64,000 bases of DNA from positions 124,001 to 188,000 of the forward strand of contig QPMI01000100.1 in assembly GCA_004431415.1 (NCBI GenBank). The letters are read 5' to 3'. The notes under the pieces were generated by a model that had not been told where the DNA came from, searched no databases, and was given only the letters and a program-made list of their open reading frames with translations. The position numbers and the translations under genes were made by a program. This DNA is from Cyanophora paradoxa CCMP329. Lineage: Eukaryota; Plantae; Glaucophyta. This document shows positions 33,593 to 51,785 of the stretch, one piece after another (the first letter of the stretch is position 1; each line of letters begins with the position of its first letter).

Positions 33593-34458
33593 TCATCGCT
33601 CGGCGTCGAGGGCGTGCTTCTTGAGGTCCTCGAGGCGCGTGTACTCCAGGGCCTTCTCGTGCGTGGCCGCCAGGACGACGGGCGGGGCCACGCCGGCCTC
33701 CAGCGCCTCCTGCCAGCGGCCTGCGCGAGATTCGAATTCGATGATCAGCGATGCAGATTGCTCGGGTACGGGGACCACCGGATCGCATTGGGGACACGCA
33801 CTTGCGCAAAGGCACCAGCGGGAGCCCGGCTTGAGGCCCGGGAATCTGTACTGGGGCCTGGGCGTGGAGAGGTCGTTGCCCCGCGCCTTCGTGAACTCCA
33901 GGAACTCCGCGGTCACCTGAGCGGCCACGACGTGCACGCCAAGATCGTCCGGCCCCGTGGCGCAGAAGCCGTCCCCTGCGAGCGCCGAGAGTGTCGGGAA
34001 ATGAGTGCGCGCGCGCGTGAATGGCGAGGATTGCGTTCGCACGGTAGAAGCCGGTCGGCGGGTCCGAGCAGCAGCGCTCGAGGTCTCCACCGAGCACGTT
34101 CTTCTCCTTCTTCTTTCCCGTGCCGTTGCCGCTGGCGCCTGCGCTCGGTGGTCAGCGTCCTGCGCGTGCGCTGGCCATGGCTATCGAATCTGCGCTGCGA
34201 CGGATGCATTTGCGAAACCGTGCTCGTGCTGCACGTGCTGACTGCATGGAGAGGCCGATCCCCGCCGACCCACGAACGCAACCGGCGCAAAAGGTACGCA
34301 CCGTTCATCGAAGCTCGTGGGCTAGCCGGGGTCGCCGTGAACGTACGCAGAGGCCGGCGCGAGGGCGCTCTAATCCTGAGCTTGGCGAGGGCGCTGGGGG
34401 TGCAGAATGCGGTGCGAGCGGTCTGCGGCACGACGACCTGGACAAAGCAGGCGTTCAT
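33593..34458 (-). CDS. DUF2237 family protein with putative plastid transit peptide
   Basis: NVLGGDLERCC.DP.TGFYRDG.C.TGPDD.G.H, EFLEFTKARGNDLSTP, FPGLKPG.RWCLCASRWQEA, APPVVLAATHEKAL. N-terminus is MNACFVQ... Confidence 0.88.
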
Positions 34459-34593: not shown

Positions 34594-36027
34594 ATGTTCG
34601 TCGCCGCCACCGTCGCCGCTCCTCGCTCGGGTGCCCGTGTCGCCCAGTCGGCCTCGGCGCTCTGCGCTCCGGCGAAGGCGATCCGCTCGGCGAAGGCTGA
34701 GTTCGCTGGATCCGCGTCTTCTGTCGGCCGGAGCTCGTTCGTCGCGGCCCCTGTCTTCGAGGCTCGCCGCGGTGAGCAATGATCGATCCACGCCGATCCA
34801 GGCCGTCTCGTCTTGATTTTGACGGGGCCTCCCAGCGACTCGCAACGTCAATGTCCGCTTCTTCGCTGCTGCCGCGGCCCTCACGCCCGACACCGGTCAT
34901 TGCACTCTTGCGCGTGCCGCACCGCGCCTATCCTCCGCTGACTCTGCCGCTCGCAGCCAAGGTGACCAACAAGGTCTACTTCGACATCGAGGCATGGCGT
35001 TCATGCGCTACGCGTAGCCTTTCTTCCCCTGACGTAGCCACTCGCAGATCGGCGACAAGAAGGCCGGCCGCGTCACCTTCGGCTTGTTCGGCGATGTGGT
35101 GCCGAAGTACGCCAAAGCCAGTCGCTTTCCGCGTACGTGCTCGGCCTCACGCGCGACTTGCAGGACCGCGGAGAACTTCCGCGCCCTCTGCACTGGCGAG
35201 AAGGGTCCGCGTCCGGGCTGGGGCGCGCTCGCAGCTGTCACGCCCTGACCAGCCCTGTGCAGGCTTCGGCTACAAGGGCTGCGCCTTCCACCGTGTGATC
35301 CCCGTGCGTTGCTGAGATCCCATGACTTACTAATTGATCTCTAATTGACCCTTTCCTGGCCGCAGGACTTCATGATCCGTACGCCTGACTGAGGTCTTTT
35401 GGAGGCGATGGAGGACAATTGTAGCTGACACACTAGAGCAGAGGGTGGCGACTTCACCTCCGGTGATGGCCGCGGCGGGAAGAGCATCTACGGTGTGTAT
35501 CATAGTATCTCGTACTTTTCACAGCATCATGAAGTCCTAATCCCTAAAACCCCCAGGCAACAAGTTCGAGGATGAGGCAAGCGGACCACGGATGCCTCTT
35601 AAAGCTATGATGTGGCGTGTGGCCTGACATGGGTACGTTCGCAGAACTTCACCCTCAAGCACACTGGCCCTGGCCTCCTCTCCATGGCCAACGCTGGTAT
35701 GTTCGTTCGCTGGCTCCAGGCTTGAGCAGGCTGACATGGTCGTGCTTTGTTCGCAGGCCCCAACACCAACGGCAGCCAGTTCTTCGTTACCACCGTCGAG
35801 ACCAAGTGGCTCGACGGCCGCCACGGTGAGCTCCACTTCGTGCCTTGTAGATATGAATCTGTAGCTGGCCAATTAATGCACCTCTTCGTCTCACGTCCGG
35901 GGTCGCAGTGGTCTTCGGCAAGGTCATCGAGGGGATGGACATCATCAAGCAGATCGAGAGCTCCCCGACCGGCCCCATGGACCGCCCCAAGAAGGCCGTT
36001 GTCATTGCCGACTGCGGCGAGCTGTAG
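34594..36027 (+). CDS. Plastid-targeted cyclophilin-type peptidyl-prolyl isomerase (CYP20-like)
   Basis: Transit peptide [10 protein letters not shown]...; [70 protein letters not shown]. Contains two GC-AG introns and 13- and 20-nt exons. Confidence 0.95.
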
Positions 36028-36207
36028 AGCTGCATCTGTCCTGCATGTTCTGTGATGTTAATTAATGTAAGCTTCTCAGTGCTTAGACTTCAACTTTTTG
36101 AAGAGTTCGATGAGAGAGAGAGTATCCTGGGGAGTACGCAATTTCAGCCTTGTTCGTCGGCCGAAGTCTTCGGCGTTATCGTTCATAGAAAACTAGTACT
36201 TCGAAAG

Positions 36208-37219: not shown

Positions 37220-39323
37220 CTATCGCAGGCTAGTCTTGTCAACTATCTGTCGTGCGTGGAGGATGCAATCATTGACCCCGACACCGTAGAAGCTGCTCCC
37301 AGTGAAGGAGAGGCGAGGGAAATAACGGGCAACCTGCTGCTCCAGTTGGGTAACAGTGTCATCTGCCAGCAGCGTGAGGGGGCGATAGAACAGCAACAAA
37401 GCTCAACGCTGACCATGCCCAACGTTGTACTGAGCGATGGCTGCAGTCAGGGCGTCAGGGAAGGGCTTGGCAGTGCAGTAAGAGAATCTCTGTGCACACC
37501 ATTAAAGCCCCGCATGACCTTAATGAGATCGGGCTTGATCTCTGGGGCGATCCCAAGGTGCTTCTTCATGTACTTGACTGCAAGGTCAATGAACTGGGCT
37601 TCTGTCATTTCTGGGAAACGCTGGGGGGCGTGTGAGTGGATGCAGCAATGCTGTCTGGAACAGCAGAGTCTATGCACCTCCTTCATCCGAGCCCCACCAA
37701 TCATCACAGTAAGCCTCGTTTGCTCTGGGGAGTGCTCCTGCTGGCCTGCTCGTGCTGATGAGAAGAGATTCACGCACGCCACAATGAGGGTTGTTCCCAC
37801 CAGGGAAGGTGCACGAGTCCCAGACCATGCCAAGGATCCCCTGGCCCTCCATCGAAGGGCACAGGTGTCCGAAGCCGCTGAAGGGCAGGACCCGCTGCTT
37901 GAAACCTGCACAGAGATCAGAAAGGCGGTCTGACCTTTCAACACACGTGGCGCACCAACAGAGACGACCGCAATGTCTGCATACTGTATGGATCGAAGCT
38001 TGGAAGCAGTGTCTGCATGCTGAGACTCGAGCAGAGGTGCTAGCAATGGCGCTGGGAGCGCCGAGAAGACGTGATCATAAGTTGCAGCTGTCAATAAATA
38101 TATCAGAACAGGGAACTGCAAACACAAAGTGTTGGACGCACAGCTTCCATCATCGAACAGCACGGAGACCTGGGGGAGGGGCAGAGGTCAGAGGGTAATC
38201 AACCGGTACGAAAGCAGGGCAAGGGCACTTTATCGTTTGCACAGGACAACTTCTGCACAGAGCGCTTCGTCAGTACTCGTGCATTCGTGTTCTTGGCCAT
38301 TGCCTCTGTAAGGGTGTCCATCCCATGCTTGAAGCTGATCAGAGCCGCCCCCTTCAACTTCTTCTCAAACTTCGGGTCGAGTGGAGGCCAGCTGCTGACG
38401 GGGGGAGGCGGGTGTGGCGACTTCTTGCTGACAATGCCGAGCTGAGCAAGGATACCGGAGGTCACTGAGCCGCTCTCCCGCTCGGCCTTCCAGAGCTGCC
38501 GGGAAAGTTTCGCGGCGCGAAAGTGACCGGGAGGGCTGAGAGCGCACGGAAGGGAAGCAGGACTTGATGGAAAGCTTTCGGGGATCGCCAGCATACACGC
38601 CAGAGATGACGGGGTCGATCTGAACGAGGCCCGAGGGCGAGTCGGCCGAGCGCCAGCGGGCACGCGGACGCCGGCACAGGGCACGCACGAGAGTTTCGGC
38701 CATCTTCGTCGAGAACCGCCTCGAGAAGAAGTCGTGGATCGATTCGTCGTGGGCGTGCCGCAGCGGCATCCGTGAGCGCTCCCGAAAGAGGACGGTGGCG
38801 AGGCCGGACGTCAGGGGCGAGCGCAAGAAGGCCGGCAAGCTGCTCGGGACCTCCTCCAGCCTGCCGTTCAGCCAGATGTACCTGCGCTTCGCAGCGCTAT
38901 CCGACACGACGACCTGCGTCGCGGCCGCGTTGGTAAGCGCTCGCAGCGCGACGCCGCACGTGCCGAGCGCCCGGCACCCACCTCATCGGCGAGACCGAGC
39001 TGCTGGATGAGGTGCATAGTCTCGCGCCCTGGCGCGCCTGAGGGCCGGACGCCACGCGGTCCCTGCTCGAGCACGAAGTCGTCCTCGCGAAGCGTGCGGA
39101 CCCATCCACCGAGTCTGCTCGACTTCTCCACCAGCGTCACGTTTACGGACGACCCGCGCACTCTGCGTCAAGGCGCCGGTCGACGTGAGCTGGGCGAACC
39201 GACGCGCCCGCCCGGCATCGCGGCGCGCGAAGCGCACTTGTTTAGGAAGTGTGCGGTAGCTAAACCGGATACGCCGCCGCCGAGGACCAGCACCTCCCGC
39301 GGCCTCGTCGCCCTCGTCAACAT
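37220..39323 (-). CDS. PPOX: Protoporphyrinogen oxidase (HemY family, mitochondrial/animal-like)
   Basis: VLGGGVSGLATA FAD motif, EKSSRLGGWVRT, EQGPRGVRP, SGVYAGDP.KLS, LGMVWDS, LTVMIGG, PQYNVGH, TGSSFYGVGVNDCI. Confidence 0.93.
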
Positions 39324-39832
39324 CGCAACGCGTCACGCTCGAGGCCGACACTCGGCAGCTACGCGAGGTCGACACTCGGCAGCTACACCGCAACGCAGCG
39401 CTGCCTCGACGCGCCCGCGTCCTATGCGCGCTGCAATGCGCTTCTTTGCGATTGTGGCTGTGTCGCAGCGGCGCTGCTGCTTCCAGCGAAATAGATGCAG
39501 ATGCAGTAGGCAGACGTGCAATCCACTTACGTTTTACGACCGCCGCTAGAGACGCGGCTGGATCTCGCCGTGTACCCGTCTAGGCCCCGAGGGCATCTCG
39601 CAAGCGCGCCGCCTCCCGGTTCGTCCTGTAGCTTCCCGAGCACATAGCGCGCGGCGGGAGTGAGCGCGCAGCGCGCTTAGCTTCAACCGTTGGTGCGTGC
39701 GCGCGCGTTGCTGACAGGTCGACCAACCCGCATATTCTCTCGTTTTAACATCGATAAGCAAGACGTCCCTAGAGCGCTGGTCGAACGGACGCCGCGTGAG
39801 CATGACCGGTGGCGCGCAGGCGGTTCGCCAAC

Positions 39833-42800
39833 ATGGAGAAGATCCGCAGCAAGCGGAAGACGGGCGAGCAGGCTGCGTCGCAGCCTCAAGCTGAAGCGCA
39901 AGCGGCCAGCTCTGCAGCGCCTGCACCGGCCGCGTCAAGCGCACCGGTTGCTCCGTCTGCGAAGTCGGTGCGAAGGATCCAGCCGATGTGCACGCGTCAG
40001 GGCCGTATTTTGATGCGGCGTTTGTTTCTTTCCACAGGACAACCCCGCACAGAAAGCGGCTGCGGCTGCGGCTGAACGCGCCGCCGCTGAGAAGGCCAAG
40101 GAGCGCGAGGCGGCCGAGCAGCGCGTGAAGGTGCTCCCTCGCGTTGTTCTCTTATCGCCTTATCGCCGAAGATCTGACTGACCTCACTTCGCGTGCAGGC
40201 CGAGGAGGAGGCGCGCAGGGCGGCCCAGGCAACGGCGGAGCGCGCAGCGGCGGAGAAGAAGGCGGCCGGGGACAAGGCGGCCGCCGAAAAGGCGGCAGCA
40301 GAGCGTGCGGCCGCCGAGAAGCGGGCCGCTGAGGAGAAGGCGGCAGCAGACAAGACAGCGGCCGCCAAGAAGGCCGCCGAGGAGAAGGCGGCAGCCGAGC
40401 GCAAGGCCGCTGAGGAGAAGGCGGCGAAGGAGGCGGCAGAGAAGCGCGCGGCGGAGGAGAAGGCGGCGGCTGCAAAGGCGGCGGCGGCCAAGGCGGCCGA
40501 GGAGAAGGCGGCGGCCGAGAAGCGCGCCGCCGAGGAGAAGGCGGCTGCGGAGCGCAAGGCCGCGGAGGCCAAGGCCGCAGCCGAGCGTGCAGCCGCAGAG
40601 AAGAAGGCCGCTGAAGAAAAGGCGGCCGCGGAACGCAAGGCGGCCGAGGAGAAGGCGGCGGCAGACCGTGCTGCTGCTGAGAAGAAGAAGGCTGAAGAAA
40701 AGGCGGCAGCAGAACGTAAGGCCGCCGAAGAAAAGGCAGCTGCGGAGCGACGGGCGGCCGAGGAGAAGGCGGCAGCGGAGCGCAGGGCGGCCGAGGAGAA
40801 GGCGGCAGCGGAGCGCAGGGCGGCCGAGGAGAAGGCGGCAGCGGAGCGCAAGGCGCGGGAAGAGGAGGAGGCTCGCCGCGAAGCGGCGGCGAAGGCGGCC
40901 GCCGAGCGAGCCATCGCTGAGCAGGTGGCGGCGGAGAAGCGGGCGGCCGAGGAGAAAGCTGCGGCGGCCAAGGCAGCGGCCGAGAAGGCGGCGGCGGAGC
41001 GGCTCGCGGCTGCGGAGAAGGCGGCCGCGGAAAGAGCGGCGGCTCTGGCGGCGAAGGAGGCGGCGGAGGAGGCCGAGAGGGCGCGACGGGCGGAGAAGGC
41101 GCGCCGCGACGCGGCGGAGGCAGAGCGCATGCGGCGCGAGGTGGGCCGGCCGGCCCCGCCCCGCCCCCTCCCTGTATGCCCGCCCGCCCGCGCATCTTGC
41201 CGACGCCCCGCCGCTGCGCAGCTCGAGCAGAAGCGGCTGGCAGACGAGGCAGAGCGGCGGCTGCGCGTGCAGGCGAGCGAGCGCTGGGCGGGGCCCGCTC
41301 GGCCGCGCGCGGCGGCGCCGGTCTGACGCAGCCCGCGCGCCGCAGATGGGCGCCCCGTCGGCTTCGTCGTCGGCTGTGGCGTCGCCGGCGCCGGCGGCGG
41401 TGGCGAACGGCGTGGAGCACGCGCCCCGCGCGGCGGGCCGCCCCGAGCAGGACGTGGCGTCCATAGTCGCGGTGGGCCTCCGTCTCCGGGCCCCGCCCGC
41501 CCGCAGCACCGGCCCCGAGAAGCTCACGTATGCGCTCAGGCGGCGGCGCTGGCGCGGGCGCGGCGGCGGGCGGAGGAGGACGAGAGGCGGCGGCAGGAGC
41601 GGGCGGACGTGGACCGGCACAAGCGCGAGATGGCCGAGGCGGCGGCCCGCGAGGCCGAGGAGGCGATGCGCCGGCGGCGGGAGCAGGCGGAGGCCAACCG
41701 CCGCGCCGCGGCCGAGGCCGAGCTCAAGAAGAAGCAGGTCCGACGCGCCGGCGCGCCGCGCCGCGTCCCGGGGTTGGGCACCGATGAGCGGCCGCCTTGC
41801 GGGGGCAGGAGGAGGAGCGGCGGCGGGCGGACGAGGAGCGGAGGCGGCGGGAAGCCGAGGCCAAGGCCAAGGCGGAGGAGGAGCGGCGGCGCAAGGAGGA
41901 GGAGGAGCGCTGGCGCCGCGAGGCGGAGGCGGAGGCGGCGCGCGCGGCGGCCGAGGAGCAGCGGCGCGCCCGCGAGGAGGAGGAGGCGAAGACACGCGCG
42001 GCGGAGGAGGCCCGCCGCAGGGTGCGTCGTTTCCGCCCGAGCTCCCCCCTGGCTAGCTGGCGGGCCGGCGCTCACCCCGAGCAGGCCGAGGAGGAGGAGG
42101 CGCGCAGAGAAGCTGCGGCCCAGGCGGCCGCGGAGCGCGCGGCGGCCGAGCGGAGGGCCGCTGAAGAGAAGGCGGCGGCGGAGCGCAAGGCGGCCGCCGA
42201 GAAGGCGGCCGCCGAGGCCAAGGCCAAGGCGGAGGCCGAAGCAAAGGCCAAGGCGGAGGCGGAAGCGAAGGCCGCCGAGAAGCGAGCCACTGAGGAGAAG
42301 GCGGCGGCGGAGAAGGCGGCCGCCGCCAAGAAGGCCGCCGAGGAGAAGGCGGCAGCCGAGCGCAAGGCCGCTGAGGAGAAGGCGGCGAAGGAGGCGGCCG
42401 AGAAGCGCGCGGCGGAGGAGAAGGCGGCGGCTGCGAAGGCGGCGGCGGCCAAGGCGGCCGAGGAGAAGGCGGCGGCCGAGAAGCGCGCCGCCGAGGAGAA
42501 GGCGGCGGCGGAGCGCAAGGCCGCTGAGGAGAAGGCGGCAGCCGAGCGCAAGGCAGCTGAGGAGAAGGCAGCCTCGGAGAAGCGCACGGCGGATGCCAAG
42601 GGCGCGGCGGAGAAGCGCGCGGCGGGCGAGAAGGCGGCCGAGGACAAGAAGGCCGCGGACAAGGCGGCAGAGAAGGCGGCGGCCGACAAGGCGGCCGCTG
42701 AGAAGAAGGCGGGCGAGGAGCGCGCGGCTGCGGCGAAGGCGGCGGCCGAGAAGCGCGCGGCGGAGGAGAAGGCGGCCGCCGCCAAGAAGGCGGCCGAGGA

Positions 42801-45800
42801 GCAGGCGGCGAAGGATAAGGAGGCGGCAGAGAAGGCGGAGGCGGCCGCCGCGGAGGCGTCGGCGTCGTCGTCGTCCAAGGGCAAGAGCAAGAAGAAGAAG
42901 GGGAAGGGCGGGGCGGGCAAGGCCGAGGAGGATGCGGCTGAGGCGAAGGCGGCGGAGGCGAAGGCGGAGGCGGAGCGGGCGGAGATGGCGGCGGCTGCGG
43001 AGCGGACGGCGAAGGAGGCGGAGCGAAGGGCGCGCGTCGCGGCGGAGGAGGCGGCCGCCGCGGAGCGCACGGCGGCCGAGGCGGCCGCCGCGGATCGATC
43101 GCGCGCGGAGGCCGACCGCGCCCGCGCGACGGCCGCCGCGGCGGCGGCCGAGCGGCGCCTGAAGGCGGCCTCGGAGCCGGCCCGGCGGCGGCCCCCGCCG
43201 CTGCTGCCCCCGCCCCCGCAGCCGCCTCCGCAGCCGCTGCTGCGCCGGCGACGCCGGCCAAGTCGACGGTGCGCGGGCCGCGCCGCGCGCAGTCTACGTA
43301 GATTTCTCAAAGAGAGCGGCAGGACACGGTGGTGGAGACTGCGGAGGAGGCGTCGGCGCGGCGCAGGCGCGACGAGGCCAAGGCACGCGCTCCCGTCCCT
43401 TCCCCTCGGCTTCAGCTTAGGCTTTCGGCTGACGGCGGGGCGCGGGCGCGCAGGGCGCCGCGGTGGCCGCTGAGGACGCGGCGGCGGCGCGGAGGGCCGA
43501 GGCGGACAAGAAGGCGGGGGCGCAGGGCCCCCCGACCCTCGGCTGCAGCCGCGTGCGCACACACGCGCCCTTTCCCCCATCCATCCATCCGCCCCGCCAT
43601 CCCCTTAAGAAGAGCGCAGGGCGCGGACGGCGAGTGGAGCTTCGCCGTCTTCGCGCCGCACGCGAGCCGCGCGTGGATCTTCGTCCAGGCGGGGCCCGAC
43701 CACGCGGGCGCGCCCGAGGCGCGGGCGGCCGGCGAGGAGCTGGAGATGGAGCGGTACACGGCGCACGGGCTCTACACGGCGACCGTGCCGGGCCTGCTCC
43801 CCGGCGACCGCTACTGCTTCGTCTTCGAGCAGCCGGCGCCGGAGGAGGACGACGAGGAGTACGACGAGGACGGAGAGCGGGAGCGGCGGCGCCGGTTCGC
43901 GGAGGCGGCCGCGTGGGCGGCGCAGGTCCGGGGCGAGCCGCTGCCGGCCCCGGAGGAGGCCGAAGGCGAGGCCAAGAAGAAGGAGACGGGGCCCCGGCTC
44001 CTCCGCCGCCGCGACCCCTACGCCCGCGCCGCCGTGCGCCCATCCACCCATACTCTAAATACGATCTGCTCCTCAACTCTGCTCTCTTTAGAGCTTCTAA
44101 AAACTAGTATAAATAACCCTAGATACTCTAAATGCACTCTGCTCCTCACCTCTCTTCAGGACTTCGACTCGGAGCTGTGCATCGTGTGCGACGACGGGGC
44201 GGACTTCGAGTGGGCGCCCTTCGCGGCCGAGGCCCCCGAGGACATGGTCATCTACGAGCTGCACGCCTCGGGTGAGTGAATGAATGAACCCCAATCATAA
44301 CTTTGTAACTAACGAACGAGAGAACGAACGAATTAACCTAATCTCGTCTATCTCTAGCTCTCTAGCGTCTATCTCTAATCTCGTGAATGAATCGCGCTCT
44401 AGCTCCTCATCCTAATCTCGACTTTCTAACTGACTAACTTCAATCTTCTTCTTCCTAAGGGATGGTGGGCCTGCGGGACGGCCTGGACTACCGCACGGAG
44501 CTCTCGGTGTACGAGAAGCTCGAGACGAAGCTCGCCCACATCGCCGGCCTCGGGTCCGACCCCTGCGCTTCCTTATACTTCTGCGGCTCCCCGCTCTAGA
44601 GTCCTCGAGTTCTAGAATGAAGGCCTCGCTAGCTCGCTCGCTCGCTCGCGTCTGAGCCTCTTGAGCTAGCTAGTCTTACTCACGCGTCGCCCCGGCCCGG
44701 CCCGCCCCGCCCCGCAGCTTCAACACCATCCTGCTGCTCCCCGTCCAGGGTCCGCCCGCCCGTCCCTCTTCCATCCTCCCTCGCCGAAGCCGACGGGGCG
44801 GGGCCCCGCAGAGCACTCGGACGGGCTGGGCCAGGAGCCGCGCATGCCGCGGGCGCTGCACGGGCCCTGGGGCACCCCCGACCAGGTCCGTCTTGAATCT
44901 GACTTCACCTGACTTGACTAAACTTAGACCTTATTAACCTAACTAAACTTAACTTGAATCTTACTCAACTCATCTCCACTTGAACCTTTCCGCTCTCCCT
45001 CGCCTCGCCTCGACCGCTCCTAACTCGCGGTCGCTCCGGGCAGCTGCGGCGGTTCGTGGACGCGGCGCACCGCGCCGGCCTCGCGGTCCTCATCGACGTC
45101 GTCCTCGCCCACGGCGCCACAAAGGTGTCCTCGCACGCCAATATAAGAATAACAGAAGCTCGTGCTAAGCTAAGATATAGCTTAGTATACCGCCCATGCT
45201 AAGCATACTGCTTTGGCTAAGAAGATAGATATAAAACTGCTGCTGAACCGGACTAGCCACAAGAAGATAATACGTACTATGGCTGAACTTGACTGCGGTG
45301 CAGGGGAACGCGCTGTGGAACTTCGACGCGGAGGGCCCCGAGGAGGACGGCGGCATCTACTTCTTCGGCGCCGAGGAGACCCCCCGCGGCCGCCTCTTCT
45401 CCTTCGAGCGCCGCTGGGTCCGCCTGCTTCGCACCCAATCTAAGACCTAAACAAGACTAAGACCTAATAAGATCTAATAAGACCTAAGACTAAGACCTAA
45501 TGAGACTAAGACTGAGACCCCCCGCGGCCGCCTCTTCTCCTTCGAGCGCCGCTGGGTCCGTCAGTCTAAGTTCACTTTGGTTCACCTTACAGAATGAGGA
45601 ACTAGAACGTTAACCGGGCCCAACAAGACGAAGACCTAGTCAGGCCCGGGAAGGGCCCGCCCCCTTGCACTAAGACTGAGACGCCCCGCGGCCGCCTCCT
45701 CTCCTTCGAGCGCCGCTGGGTCCGTCTGCTTCGCACCCAATCTAAGACCTAAACAAGACTAAGACCTAATAAGATCTAAGAAGACCTGACACTAAGACCT

Positions 45801-48800
45801 AATAAGATCTAAATAGACCTAAGACTAAGACCTAATGAGACTAAGACTGAGACCCCCCGCGGCCGCCTCTTCCCCTTCGAGCGCCGCTGGGTCCGTCTAA
45901 GTTCACTTTGGTTCACCTTACAGAATGAGGAACTAGAACGTTAACCGGGCCCAACAAGACGAAGACCTAGTCAGGCCCGGGAAGGGTCCACCCCCTTGCA
46001 CTAAGATTGAGACGCCCCGCGGCCGCCTCTTCTCCTTCGAGCGCCGCTGGGTCAGTCTACTTCACAGCCAATCTAAGAATCTTAGAATCTTAGAGCTGTC
46101 CCAGTTGCTTGCTCGCTTGTCCCGCTTGCTTGCTTGTCTGCTTTAAGAATGGGGGGGCCGCACAGTCTACCTTTAAAAACGCCCTCAAACGCCCTCGCCG
46201 CTGTCTCAAACGCCCTCAAACGCCCTTTCTGAGCCCCTCGAACCCTCGTTTCTTGTCTTTTTGAGCCCCTAATCTACTTCACAACTGATCTAAGAACAAG
46301 AACTGCTCTGAGAATCGTTCTTGAACCAGCTCGAGTGCCCTCGCTGCTTGCTCGCTTGCCTGTCCCGCTGAGCCGCTCGCCTCGCCTCGCGCCAGGTGCG
46401 GGACCTGCTGCTGGCGGCGGCGCGCACCTTCCTCGCCGAGTACAACGCCGACGGCCTCCGCCTCCAGCGCGCCCAGGCCCGCCCGCGCCCCTCCCTCCCT
46501 CCCTCCCTTCGTTTATCGCCCTTCCGCCCTTCCCTTTTTAGTTGGGAGACGATTCCCTTCGCGTCGCCCCGCGTCGCCCGCATCGTCTGAGATCCCACTG
46601 CGCAGTACCTGCCGCTGTACTTCGCGGCGCAGATCACGCGGACCCTCAAGCAGGAGTACCCCCACAAGTACATCATCGCCGACGTGCGCCCCGCCCCGCC
46701 CCGCCCCGCCCGCCGCTCTCAACGCCAGCGCGCTCTGAAACACAAAGCTAAATATAATGAGCCCCCTCGCCCTCGCCTGCCGCTCCCGCCAGCTCATAGC
46801 TTGCTAGAGCCCCCAGCGAGCCCGCGCCCCGCCTGACGCCCCGCGCCCCGCGCCCCGCGCCTCTGCAGTACCAGCCGGAGGACCCTGAGGCGATCGTGCA
46901 GTGCGGGTTCGACGCCTGCCAGGTGCGCCGAACAGGGGCCGGGGCTACGCCGGGCCAGGCCGGGCCAGGCTAGACAGGAATAGACGACACCGCGCCCTTC
47001 TCCTCCTTGTCCCTCGCTCTGAGGCGGCCCCCCTTCTCCACGCAGCTGGCGTCGACGTGGACGGACGGGCTGCGGGCGGTGCGCGAGGCGCCCGTGGACC
47101 TCCCCTGCATCAAGCACCTCGCCGGCCTTCCCCTGGGCTTCACCCACGCCGCCCAGGTGCCTGCCGTCCCTGGCTCGCTTTAGGGCTAGACTCTTGTTGG
47201 GCGCTTGCTTGGCGCCCCCGCCTGACCCGAGCGCCCCGCCCCGCCCCGCCCCGCCCCGCCCCGCCCCCGCAGTGCGTGAAGCACCTGCTGGGCTGCCACG
47301 AGAACAACGGCGACAGCTACGACGGCTCCCAGGATGGCGCGCCCCCGCTTGCTTTGCTTTGCTTTGCTTTTCCCCTCTTTCTTCTCATTAATAACTCTTA
47401 TGCCCCGCTTATTCTTATGAACTAACTCTCTTTCTTCTTATTATAACAACTTCCCCCGCCCGCCTTGCTTTTCCCCCCGCTTGCCTTGCTTCGCCCTGGC
47501 GCGCGCGCCGCTGACCGGCTCGCAGAGGGCTCGCACCGGTACGCGGTGCAGCTGTTCGGGGGCCGCCACGACTGGTACGCGCGGGCGTTCGTCCGCATGC
47601 TCTACGCCGCGATGGGCGCCGCCGTCGGCGTGCCCCTCATGTTCATGGGCAACGAGGTCCGCCTTGTTATTATTTCTCAAGTTGTTCTTCTCAAGCTCAA
47701 GCTTTCTATCTTCATCAGTTCCTGGCGCCGAACTGGTTCGACGACAAGAAGCGCCTCTGGTGGCAGTGGGTCGACTGCCACTGGGCCCAGGTCCGTCCGA
47801 ATTTATAGATGGAAGGGGGTTAGAATTTATAGGAGGGGTCGTCGCGTCACACCTGTACATAAAAGCGTAAACAAAAAAGAAGGCGGGGCTGTCCGTCAAG
47901 TCGCCTTCCTTCCGCACTCACTCCCCCGGCCCCGGTCCGTCAGACTAGGACAATTGGCCCCACACACCCCCCCCTTACCCCCCCCCCCCCCCCACCCCCC
48001 CCGCCCCCCCCCGACCCCCCCCCCCCCCCCCGCCTCCCCTTCCCCCCTCCCTTCTCTCATCCTGCCCCTCCCCCCCCGCAGGGGATGATGCGGCTGGTGA
48101 TGGACGTGAACGGGATGCGGCGGGCCGAGGCGGCGCTGCGGGGCTCGGGCGCCTCCACTTGCTTCACCCACGAGAGCCGCGAGGCGGGGCAGGTCCGCCC
48201 GTCCGTCCGGCGTCCGGCGTCTAAATGGCTGGCTAGCTTCTAGCTAGAAACCTTCTGCGGACCTTTCGTCTTGCGGGGCTCGAACGGGAGCGCGCCCGGC
48301 TTGCTGTCTGGCTATAGCTAGCCGGATCCCTCGCTTTCGCTCGCTGACCGAGGGCGGGCCGGGGGGCAGTGCGTGGTGGCGTGGAAGCGCTCGGCCCCGG
48401 GCAGCGTCGTCCTCGCCGTCATCAACGCCTCCAACGTGCGCGCTCCTCGACTCTTCTTGTTCTCCTTATTATAGCAACACTTGACGTTATTATTAACTGT
48501 CTCTGTCTTCTTACAATCACTTCGTGTTCCTCTTCTGCAGCGCCAGTGGACGGCGTGCGACTACGGTCTGCTGGCCGACGAACCCCCCGGCACGACCTTC
48601 CACGAGCTCCTCAACTCGCAGGCCGACATCTACGGCGGCTGGGAGGGCTCCGGCAACGCCTTCCGCGAGATCCCGGTCGAGGCGGACGGCACGCTGCGGA
48701 TCAATTTGCCCAAGTGGTCCGTCCTCTACTTCCGCAGGGACGAGCCGGGCACCGAGATCCCGGTACTCCCCTCGGCGGACCCTGACCGGAAGCTCGTCAA

Positions 48801-48988
48801 CGTCGAGATCCCCTCCCCCTACGCCCCGCCCCCGGACTACGTGCCCCCCGGCTCCTCCCCCTCCTCCCAGACCTCTACCCCGGCCGCCTCCCCGGCGCCC
48901 CGGGCCGGCACGGCCGCGGCCGCCGCCCAGCGCTCGCCCGCGCCGCGCCCGGCGCCCCGCCGCCGGCCCCTCGGCCGGCAAGCGGTGA
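39833..48988 (+). CDS. Giant protein: long Ala/Glu/Lys/Arg helical rod fused to CBM48 plus GH13 (branching enzyme/TreZ-like) domain with substituted catalytic triad
   Basis: CBM48 FAVFAPHASR..RRDPYAR; GH13 VIYELH, LGFNTILLLPV, GTPDQLRRFVDAAH..GLAVLIDVVLAH, ADGLRLQ, YIIAD, GCHE, GVPLMFMGNE; C-terminal beta domain LLNSQADIYGG..INLPKWSVLYF. The fusion needs a 1-nt correction near 43181. The stop is at 48988 or 49221. Confidence 0.75.
40199..43170 (+). repeat. Coding ~33-bp (11-aa, AAEEKAAAERK-like) tandem repeats with an internal duplication (~40360-40560 vs ~42325-42525)
   Basis: Visible repeat units such as gcggccgaggagaaggcggcagcggagcgc, and a ~200-bp block repeated almost exactly in two exons. 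Confidence 0.9.
45376..46052 (+). repeat. Intronic higher-order tandem array: five copies of the 3' end of a GH13 exon plus donor, with two alternating spacer types
   Basis: gagac(c/g)ccccgcggccgcctc(t/c)tc(t/c)ccttcgagcgccgctgggtc at ~45376, 45514, 45678, 45849 and 46009. Spacers alternate A-B-A-B. Confidence 0.92.
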
Positions 48989-49976
48989 TCGTGATCGAAA
49001 TTGAATCGCTTTTCGAGCCGGGCCGAAATAGGTCTAGACCTTCGCTCTTTACAGTATCCTGTGTTTTTTGTTCGTTTTTTGCGGCCTGCTGGGCAACGGC
49101 ACGCCATGCATCAGATGCAATTGCAATGTTTCTCGTTTCACAGCCTGCTTTAGCTAGCGCTGGCATATACATTCCGATGGAATCGACATCCCGCTTTTAC
49201 ATCGACAGAGTACTTAGTTAATTCACTACGGTAGCAGTCACTGAGGCTCAAATGATAATTCTTCTTCTTCGAATTCCTTCCAAACGACGCCTTCTTCGAA
49301 TTCGAATTCTTTGGCCGCCATTGCATTGCGGGGGCCGGGCGCGTGATCATGAGCCTCGGAGCCGACGGCGGGATCCGGACCTCACGATCGGATGGTCATC
49401 CCCGGCCCCCTGGGGGGGCCCGGGGGTCCCGCCCGGGGGCACGGAACCGTCGGCATGAGAGACTCCGGCGACGCCTTCAAGGCTTCTTCGAATTTTACTA
49501 AGTTATTGGAAACGGGGTAGGGCCCCCGTTTCCTGTCACTTACAAAATGACGGTCCTGCTCATCTCCCGATCCAGCTCCGAGCTCTTAACCGAGTGCTAG
49601 GATCGCTAACGCTCCGTACGCGTGGCTCTCGCGCGCAGATTACGATTGCGATTTTTACGATCGATATCGCAGGATGAATTAATTACTAAGTTAGCCGCTG
49701 AGCTGCGCTAGCTATAGCGCTAGCTAGCTCTCCCGGCCCCCCGGGCCCCGGTTGGTCGACCACCAACCTCTTCCGCCCACAGTCTTGTGCGGCGCCGGTT
49801 AGCGCGTGGACCGGATAGAGGGGCTCCGCCGCCGTTCCCCAGGAAACTCCCTTTAAATTTGTTCACAGCACGGTCGAAGTCGTGCCGTATACGTAGTGTG
49901 TGCTGTACCCGTAGACGCGTGTCACTGTGTCACAGGCCGAGTTTGTACAATTGCATACCTTCTTCCGCAGGTCATG

Positions 49977-50194: not shown

Positions 50195-51218
50195 TTTTGG
50201 CAAGCAGACGCACTCAGCGCCGGCGCCGGTGGCTTCACACTGCATGATCGGCAAGCGCTCTGTCTTCTCCAGCGCGGCTCGGGGTCAGATGCTTCGGGAA
50301 GGTTCTCTCCCTCGCGGAACCATCCATCGTAATTTCCCTCAGCTGAAAGCGCAGACGCGCAGGCGTTGACTACATCCGCTCGATGAAGGAGGCACTTGCA
50401 TGCACGGATCCGGAGGAGCGTGCAACCCGTCTAGCCCTGGTTCGACCGCGAATGCCGTGCGAGGTCCTCGCGCTTGCGTACGATACGATGCCAGCACTTT
50501 GGCGTGCGCAGGTTGTCTCAGATGCGTCGAAATTCGCGATTGGCGATGTGATGAAGGCGATCGATGTCCTCGACAAGAGGGTCGACGGCCTGAAGGAATA
50601 CATGAAGACGAACTCCGAAGCCCTCGACAAGAGGGTCGACGGCCTGAAGGAAGACATGAAGAAGAACTCCGAAGGCCTCGACAAGAGGGTCGACGGCCTG
50701 AAGGAAGACATGAAGAAGAACTCCGAAGGCCTCGACAAGAGGGTCGACGGCCTGAAGGAAGACATTAGCGGTGCCATGAAGACGAACTCCGAAGCCCTCG
50801 ACAAGAGGATGGGCAGCATCGAGTGGCTTATCCAGGTGCGGGATTTTCGATCTCCAAGCCCCTCGCGCTGTCCTTGCGCTGCAAGGTCTGACATTCGAAA
50901 TTTCAATAGATCCTGGTGGCCAGCGTCAGCGTCGCTATCGCGTGCGCTCCCTTCCTGTATGATCTATTTTTCCACAGGCTCATTTCTTTCTGCAGGATCT
51001 GGGCTTTACGCGGCACCACAGCACCGACCAGCACTTCAGCTCCGACCAGCAGCCCAGCACCGACCCCGCCCACCATGCTGGTCCCCAACCTCGGAGCTCG
51101 AGTGGGGACCAGCGATGCCAGCGCTTTCGCATCGCCCAAGAGCCCGCCGCCGCCCCCCGAGCTCGCTGTGGCCGGCACGACGCCCGCCATGCAGCGAGCC
51201 GCACCCCCCCGGACCTGA
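50067..51218 (+). CDS. Hypothetical membrane-anchored coiled-coil protein with 18-aa tandem repeats
   Basis: Arg-rich N-terminus; LDKRVDGLKEDMKKNSEG about 4 times (54-bp repeat, 50569-50810); spliced hydrophobic segment WLIQILVASVSVAIAIWAL; Pro/Thr-rich tail. Confidence 0.55.
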
Positions 51219-51785
51219 GTACTTTGCAAGCGGTCTGGGATGCCATCGCGCTGCCCTTGCCTTGCGGATGTGCCTGGATGCGGCTCTCGCACTGGCCCGC
51301 TGGCCCTGGCCTCTCGTTTTACATCGCTCTCCGTCCCATTCTCCCGTTGCATTACTATAGCTCGTGACTTGGGCAGTTCGGACGAGGCCAGGATATGCAA
51401 CATGTACATTATTGTACCAGTATTGTCTTCTGAGGGGTGTCTAGGTTGAGTTGGGTCCTTATTTCAAACATGCAGCAGTTTCCGCAGCTTTTTGGAAGTG
51501 TAAAGCTTTCGGAATTCGCCGAGTCGTGCTTTAATTTGGCAGCTCTCTTCTGAGCAGAAGCTAGTGCTCTCTTCTGAGCAGAAGCTAGCTCAGAGCTCGT
51601 GGTTCCTCTGAGATATCGATCCGTTCCAGATCCTCGGACATTTACAAATTGATGTCGACGTCTCCATAAGTCTCATGCTTGAGGTCAGAGGCGATCTGCT
51701 TCTATATGATATATAGCTGCTAGGCTAGGCTAACTCGACACGGACACAGCGATCCCCGGCAGAGCGCCGCCGCCCGCGCCTGGGC

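Follow-up and report, generated by a model that had tools for sequence, protein, structure and literature searches.

What does a protein do that has kept the whole domain layout of a glucan enzyme, has lost the residues of its active site and carries ahead of them a charged rod hundreds of residues long? The question is raised by a gene of the glaucophyte alga Cyanophora paradoxa CCMP329, found in a stretch of 64,000 nucleotides (contig QPMI01000100.1 of assembly GCA_004431415.1, positions 124,001 to 188,000 of the forward strand). This stretch is called the window below; its own numbering is used throughout, and features lie on the plus strand unless stated otherwise. The gene extends over 39833-48988 and, as modelled here, consists of 27 exons encoding about 1,746 amino acids (186 kDa). 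A preliminary description, made from the letters alone, had proposed a catalytically dead CBM48-GH13 module on a long helical spacer that could anchor or space starch granules in the cytosol. Our analysis supports the loss of catalysis well and revises the rod. We consider it roughly 45% probable that the protein is a cytosolic pseudoenzyme tether of the starch system, docking on starch or on starch enzymes by a non-canonical surface.

Without the nucleophile Asp, no glycosyl-enzyme intermediate can form in GH13 enzymes. At this position the predicted protein has Gln1365 (CAG, 46465-46467, within GLRLQ), the acid/base is replaced by Asp1394 (GAC, 46681-46683, within IIAD) and the transition-state stabiliser of region IV by Glu1459 (GAG, 47300-47302, within GCHE). 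Counted over about 245 relatives in which these sites are filled, the family residues are Asp (245/246), Glu (244/246) and Asp (243/244), respectively. All three substitutions are as first described, and so are the changes of WGY to LGQ and of TPWG to TPRG. We compared 5,991 letters of the window (43020-49010) with four runs (X1, X2, X8 and X13), of which X1, X2 and X8 are RNA, since introns are skipped in them, unlike in X13. The nucleophile codon is inside a piece matched by RNA with zero differing letters. A masked repeat adjoins the acid/base codon, and the codon of region IV falls in a 63-letter RNA piece; support for these two comes from the assembly together with exact agreement of exon length, not from RNA letters. 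Neither an alternative donor nor a hidden intronic motif that would restore Asp/Glu/Asp was found at the locus. That the head is catalytically dead is thus well supported.

The substitutions are not confined to the triad. Across 69 close relatives, conservation reaches 90% or more in 95 alignment columns, and 77 of these are kept in the Cyanophora protein and 18 changed. With the cleft delimited by a rule drawn up after the alignment had been seen, changes affect 15 of 40 cleft sites and 3 of 55 sites elsewhere (Fisher p=1.2e-4), the family median number of cleft changes being 0. The family motif WGYN has become LGQE (L1257, Q1259, E1260; 44826-44837), with loss of the stacking Tyr and Trp, and the domain B Trp aligns with Arg (R1331; 45385-45387). 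Residues corresponding to Y155, D156 and W218 of Sulfolobus MTHase are among those lost, the first and the last being replaced by Gln and Arg. In the Sulfolobus enzyme Y155 and W218 bind substrate, and the Y155A mutation raises KM about 7.5-fold and lowers efficiency to 0.63% (PMC3716775). Six more cleft aromatics are gone (positions 1211, 1253, 1257, 1372, 1412 and 1418), while the protein still has H1299, D1294, R1363 and H1458. It has gained Trp at 1341, 1528, 1531 and 1536; a Trp cluster in exon 24 (W1520, W1528, W1529, W1531 and W1536; 47719-47790), three of them new relative to the family, is a candidate docking surface. Because changes are concentrated in the cleft and 52 of the 55 invariant sites outside it are kept, the pattern points to purifying selection on the fold, not to decay as a pseudogene, in agreement with the pseudoenzyme that had been proposed. 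The G+C content of third codon positions (GC3) in the head is 0.96-0.99.

The head has the composition of a GH13 enzyme: a CBM48 domain (43620-44033; Pfam PF02922, E 6.8e-6) into which some 40-50 aa of acidic helix are inserted, a GH13 barrel with regions I-IV and domain B (exons 12-25, 44160-48147), whose fold is retained and whose cleft is remodelled, and a C-terminal beta domain (48148-48738; PF02806, E 1.1e-8). Both Pfam matches, the first obtained with exon 11 and the second with the public record of the tail, are above the Pfam cut-off. For exon 11, structure prediction gave a beta-sandwich interrupted by a helical insertion (mean pLDDT 82), similar to the domains found at the N-terminus of pullulanases, GlgX, isoamylases, MTHases and branching enzymes. 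The GxFxxW motif, the Trp pair of PTST/AMPK type, is absent from this CBM48 and from those of close relatives, active members included. Replacement of CBM48 Trp positions by Phe and Tyr had been put forward as a caveat; the replacements are present, conservative and probably in the core; of more weight is that the whole subfamily is without the PTST/AMPK-type motif. Canonical glucan binding by the head appears doubtful, given the loss of cleft aromatics and a CBM48 without this motif, and the glucan binding initially proposed is so far unsupported.

To which family does the head belong? Searching with exon 27, followed by alignments of the matches, led to an unnamed subfamily lying between GlgB and TreZ. 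Its nearest solved structures and NCBIfam matches are GH13_9 GlgB and GH13_10 MTHase/TreZ; assignment to either was rejected, as eight intact relatives score about 130-210 bits against GlgB/TreZ cut-offs of 464-741. Members come from apicomplexans (Toxoplasma XP_018634932/AAU01394, Neospora CBZ55921), Chromera (Cvel_20619), dinoflagellates, chlorophytes (Chlorella), streptophyte algae (Mesostigma, Chlorokybus, Closterium) and some bacteria; a further member is from a probable colponemid (transcriptome prefix GILK). The eukaryotic relatives found belong to lineages that store starch or amylopectin. The Cyanophora protein shares with them the full CBM48-barrel-C layout, the subfamily motifs and identities of at most 35-40%, and falls inside the GlgB-TreZ-like clade with 100/100 support, on a long branch (1.05-1.23 changes per site); the placement is to clade level. 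It differs from the subfamily, where the triad is Asp/Glu/Asp, by Gln/Asp/Glu, by the lost cleft aromatics, by the CBM48 insertion and by an N-terminal rod region of 1,000 residues, which no member found possesses; none of 13 relatives checked for N-terminal extensions bears such a rod, in word searches that reach up to about 1,040 aa. Identity of the subfamily with Toxoplasma SBE1 was rejected, the Neospora member not being SBE1. The Toxoplasma member may be the amylopectin-degrading alpha-AMY (TGME49_246690), an identification that chromosome XII locus tags make plausible. Loss of alpha-AMY in Toxoplasma leads to amylopectin accumulation (PMC7533317). A word search with the read-through open reading frame 43302-44276 gave zero matches, and single exons gave no useful match against PDB sequences and plasmids. 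In both trees a bacterial group is nested in the eukaryote-rich clade beside the dinoflagellates, which hints at transfer. Models from Closterium NIES-64/65 begin with 350 aa of Trp-bearing, charged helical sequence ahead of an intact enzyme; this extension has no Pfam match, is absent from the models of other Closterium strains and may be a fused gene model.

A second disabled copy was found in the same subfamily. In GBG81007 of Chara braunii the nucleophile is His and the acid/base Asp, as seen in its genomic exon, two cleft Trp are lost, and 6 of 8 cleft changes fall at positions also changed in Cyanophora; the protein has 580 aa and no rod. A clade uniting the two was rejected with cleft columns removed (p-AU 0.009), so the trees indicate that the cleft losses in Cyanophora and Chara are independent.

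Is the gene expressed as modelled? Its exons are located at 39833-39967, 40038-40130, 40199-41140, 41222-41272, 41346-41471, 41540-41737, 41809-42021, 42085-43268, 43323-43382 (exons 1-9), 43454-43552, 43620-44033, 44160-44271, 44460-44553, 44718-44749, 44812-44885, 45044-45124, 45304-45417, 46396-46476 (exons 10-18), 46606-46683, 46869-46922, 47046-47156, 47273-47336, 47526-47656, 47719-47790, 48082-48192, 48370-48435 and 48541-48988 (exons 19-27). The introns are of GT/GC-AG type, with GC donors in 4 of 26, and a single reading frame of 1,746 aa, closed by TGA at 48986-48988, results once three C's are added. RNA contigs from X1 and X2 read these extra C's behind 43180, 48942 and 48954, and the gaps are assembly errors, not real frameshifts; no substituted letter was seen in any run. 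This resolves the indel noticed near 43181 and confirms 48988 as the gene end after restoration of the last two C's. Introns 8-26 (19 introns) are fixed by 14 RNA joints, the loose ends 44034 and 44160, and contig offsets. An X2 contig of 2,503 nt (record 13) reads through the spliced gene from 43020 to 48841, with about 104 further letters upstream of the compared stretch, and keeps a constant coordinate offset to the model at 9 of 9 checkpoints; X8 record 18 does likewise at 8. Since the X2 contig is continuous, the last rod segment (rod D), the linker behind it, CBM48, barrel and C-terminal domain share one transcript; rod C is encoded by the same exon as rod D (exon 8). The single transcript proposed for 39833-48988 is thus borne out from the end of the rod onward. 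For 39833-43019 it was inferred from sequence, as were introns 1-7, the RNA comparison having covered 43020 onward; these introns measure 63-81 nt, have splice scores within or near the range of the RNA-verified ones and are in phase 0, as are all first 11 introns (39968-43619). The GH13 exons join without internal stops, in agreement with the RNA joints, and spliced RNA from three runs of three separate studies, the intact frame and the constrained fold identify a real expressed gene.

In public data the gene is represented by EukProt record tig00000402_g228.t1, which matches the last exons at 100% and covers just the last 217 aa with the tail frame uncorrected. The missing C's probably help explain this fragmentation. 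In intron 17 (978 nt) the 3' end of exon 17, including its GT donor, is repeated several times in tandem (45376-46138, periods of about 160-331 nt), and the RNA joint at this intron bypasses every copy. An out-of-frame upstream ATG opens a frame of about 30 codons (39802-39894) that overlaps the main start codon. Extension of the gene in the 5' direction is limited because a divergent neighbour starts about 0.5 kb upstream.

Ahead of the head, four segments located between residues 49 and 950 contain about 840 helical residues, close to the 850-900 aa of Ala/Glu/Lys/Arg repeats first estimated. A basic start rich in Ala, Ser and Pro (residues 1-48, 39833-40046) has neither Phe nor a hydrophobic signal. 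Rod A (residues 49-407, 40047-41272) consists of 11-residue Ala/Glu/Lys/Arg repeats with 46% Ala and is followed by a helix-breaking Pro/Ala/Ser/Val linker (residues 408-448, 41346-41468). Rod B (residues 449-600, 41469-42126) has the ER/K single-alpha-helix pattern, with 28% Glu, 26% Arg and a charge period of about 8. Rod C (residues 601-843, 42127-42855) returns to the repeat of rod A, the two having 46-49% Ala, and contains an exact 70-aa duplicate of residues 130-199. A Ser run and a Lys/Gly polybasic patch of net charge +7 (residues 844-864, 42856-42918) precede rod D (residues 865-950) and a Pro/Ala linker (951-981), which together occupy 42919-43268 and include the C missing behind 43180. 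At the other end of the protein is a Pro/Ala/Ser tail (48739-48988), in which the C's behind 48942 and 48954 are absent from the assembly.

Basic residues are followed by an acidic one at +4 in 68 of 92 cases in rod A (21 after shuffling) and in 48 of 61 in rod C (14 after shuffling). The apolar moment of these rods is 0.07, compared with 0.10 in shuffled sequence and 0.32 in a known dimerising Ala-seam design, and Leu, Ile, Val, Met and Phe make up no more than 3% of the rod. It is known that Ala-rich helix designs are able to dimerise (PMC5347031). A heptad or Ala-seam coiled coil is not supported by the pattern, the apolar moment being below that of shuffled sequence. The rod is rich in Glu, Lys and Arg, has i+3/i+4 salt bridges and is without a hydrophobic seam, as the published rules for single helices demand (PMC5347031), and a coiled coil explains its sequence less well than single alpha-helices do. 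It resembles the ER/K domains of myosins and caldesmon in its K/R-to-E(+4) salt bridges and in lacking an apolar seam; it is far longer in total, Ala makes up almost half of rods A and C, and its monomeric helix is predicted. Since the persistence length of a single alpha-helix is near 15 nm (PMC5347031), 126 nm would be the maximum contour length and the rod a semi-flexible tether; a rigid spacer of about 130 nm was an overstatement, also in view of the Pro-containing linker that interrupts the rod. The rod had no family match in ESM Atlas or Pfam. Identity with an epiplastin was considered and is not supported: epiplastin repeats form an acid-base-dyad domain of beta-strand or coil, with VPV motifs in glaucophytes (PMC6212826), and the rod is Ala-rich and nearly free of Val and Pro.

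The first Phe of the protein is residue 1042. Cyanelle transit peptides carry a Phe within their first 10 residues, although the rule is not absolute (PMC4510345). The modelled sequence has no Phe-type transit peptide, in agreement with the earlier account, and no transmembrane segment, and the protein is likely to be cytosolic.

How could such a protein work? In the mechanism that we favour the rod would be a semi-flexible chain of single alpha-helices, with a contour of up to about 126 nm, holding the head away from a second anchor that the basic N-terminus or the polybasic patch might provide. The head would dock on starch granules or starch-metabolising enzymes by its outer surface and not by the old active site, through retained or new surface aromatics such as the Trp cluster of exon 24, and the tether would space or position granules or their enzymes. 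We favour starch because the glucan-enzyme domains are all kept, the eukaryotic relatives are starch-storing and disabled CBM48-GH13 proteins serve starch elsewhere; a role at the granule itself we infer from ancestry and location only. That glaucophytes thereby made a granule positioning device of their own, with a relative of starch enzymes turned into a non-catalytic head that docks at the end of a single-helix tether about 0.1 micrometre long at most, is a more tentative proposal.

Several observations weigh against the starch tether. The cleft has lost its aromatics, and the CBM48 does not belong to the PTST type. No parent-subfamily member confirmed as biochemically characterised was found. 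Among the best 120 matches listed (about 320-1,040 aa) there was neither a glaucophyte orthologue nor an active Cyanophora paralogue, public Cyanophora models being fragmentary. 

Non-catalytic GH13 proteins and CBM48-helix adaptors are already known; our literature search did not find this subfamily, the CBM48-GH13-rod architecture or the repeated inactivation described. Plant PTST1/2 are likewise non-catalytic proteins with CBM48 and long helical segments, but they have short coiled coils and no barrel, are plastidial and target a starch enzyme. PTST binds starch via W217/W255 (PMC4339375), a motif absent here, and the Cyanophora protein has neither a Trp pair of AMPK W100/W133 type nor a heptad coiled coil. 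Together with PTST, ISA2 is an established non-catalytic starch protein (PMC4919380), and a disabled myzozoan BE2/GT4 fusion is essential for cytosolic starch (bioRxiv 10.64898/2026.09.25.754361). ISA2 and the fusion show that disabled CBM48-GH13 proteins act in starch synthesis, although they belong to other GH13 subfamilies and have no long rod; ISA2, moreover, has a known active partner, whereas the matches listed include no such subfamily paralogue in Cyanophora.

Nearly as likely as the starch-system tether is a structural scaffold unrelated to starch, in which the dead GH13 fold would have been recruited for protein interaction or oligomerisation, at the end of a long single-helix spacer belonging to the cytoskeleton, flagellar apparatus, cell cortex or nucleus. 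The loss of almost all sugar-stacking residues from the cleft and the non-canonical CBM48 would suit this explanation, and polybasic patches could be signals for nuclear localisation or for lipid or microtubule binding; on the other hand, three glucan-enzyme domains have been kept together, many aromatics outside the cleft are retained and the rod is not an epiplastin (PMC6212826). An improbable alternative, the one nearest to the preliminary description, is a lectin-type pseudoenzyme that has lost catalysis alone and whose cleft still binds malto-oligosaccharides or chains of the granule surface. The triad changes are indeed polar and conservative (Asp to Gln, Glu to Asp, Asp to Glu) and H1299, D1294, R1363 and H1458 remain, but the Gln and Arg at the MTHase Y155/W218 positions and the six further missing aromatics speak against a sugar-binding cleft. 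The gene might also be shorter, with exon 8 onward (rods C and D and the head) forming one protein with a tether of about 330 helical residues, and exons 1-7 a separate or alternative transcript. We rate this lower still: the RNA comparison began at 43020 and the public annotation splits the locus, but introns 1-7 are regular, in phase 0 and in one open frame, exon 8 has a normal acceptor and the exact 70-aa duplicate is common to rods A and C. An enzyme with changed chemistry, using a nearby carboxylate such as E1398 or E1459, is very unlikely; carboxylates occupy two of the three triad positions, but an amide stands at the nucleophile position, the stacking Tyr is missing and the sole precedent in 246 relatives is the second degenerate copy. 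A decaying pseudogene, to which the long branch and the repeats accumulated in intron 17 might point, is hardly credible given the spliced RNA of three studies, the intact frame, 95% of invariant non-cleft sites kept and the high GC3 of the head.

The gene lies head to head with its minus-strand neighbour (about 37220-39330), which by eye is protoporphyrinogen-oxidase-like, with a GGGVSGL dinucleotide-binding start. Farther away on the minus strand, a cyclophilin-like gene (about 35000-36050) and a small DUF2237-like gene (about 33600-34200) were also read by eye. An open reading frame at 50383-51360 contains about five 18-residue amphipathic repeats and has a weak apolipoprotein match (E 0.0015), far below the cut-off.

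The cytosolic starch pathway of glaucophytes has been the subject of only one biochemical study (bioRxiv 10.64898/2026.09.25.754361). For granule initiation and positioning in this cytosol the gene, hidden in public annotation as a 217-aa tail fragment, is a concrete and testable candidate. It also draws attention to a hitherto overlooked GH13 subfamily from protists and algae that store starch. Members were disabled in at least two cases, Cyanophora and Chara, at the same positions of the cleft, which suggests a non-catalytic role. If the starch-tether interpretation is true, this would be the first candidate for the placing or spacing of granules in an alga with cytosolic starch, independent of the PTST, MRC and MFP1 proteins of plants.

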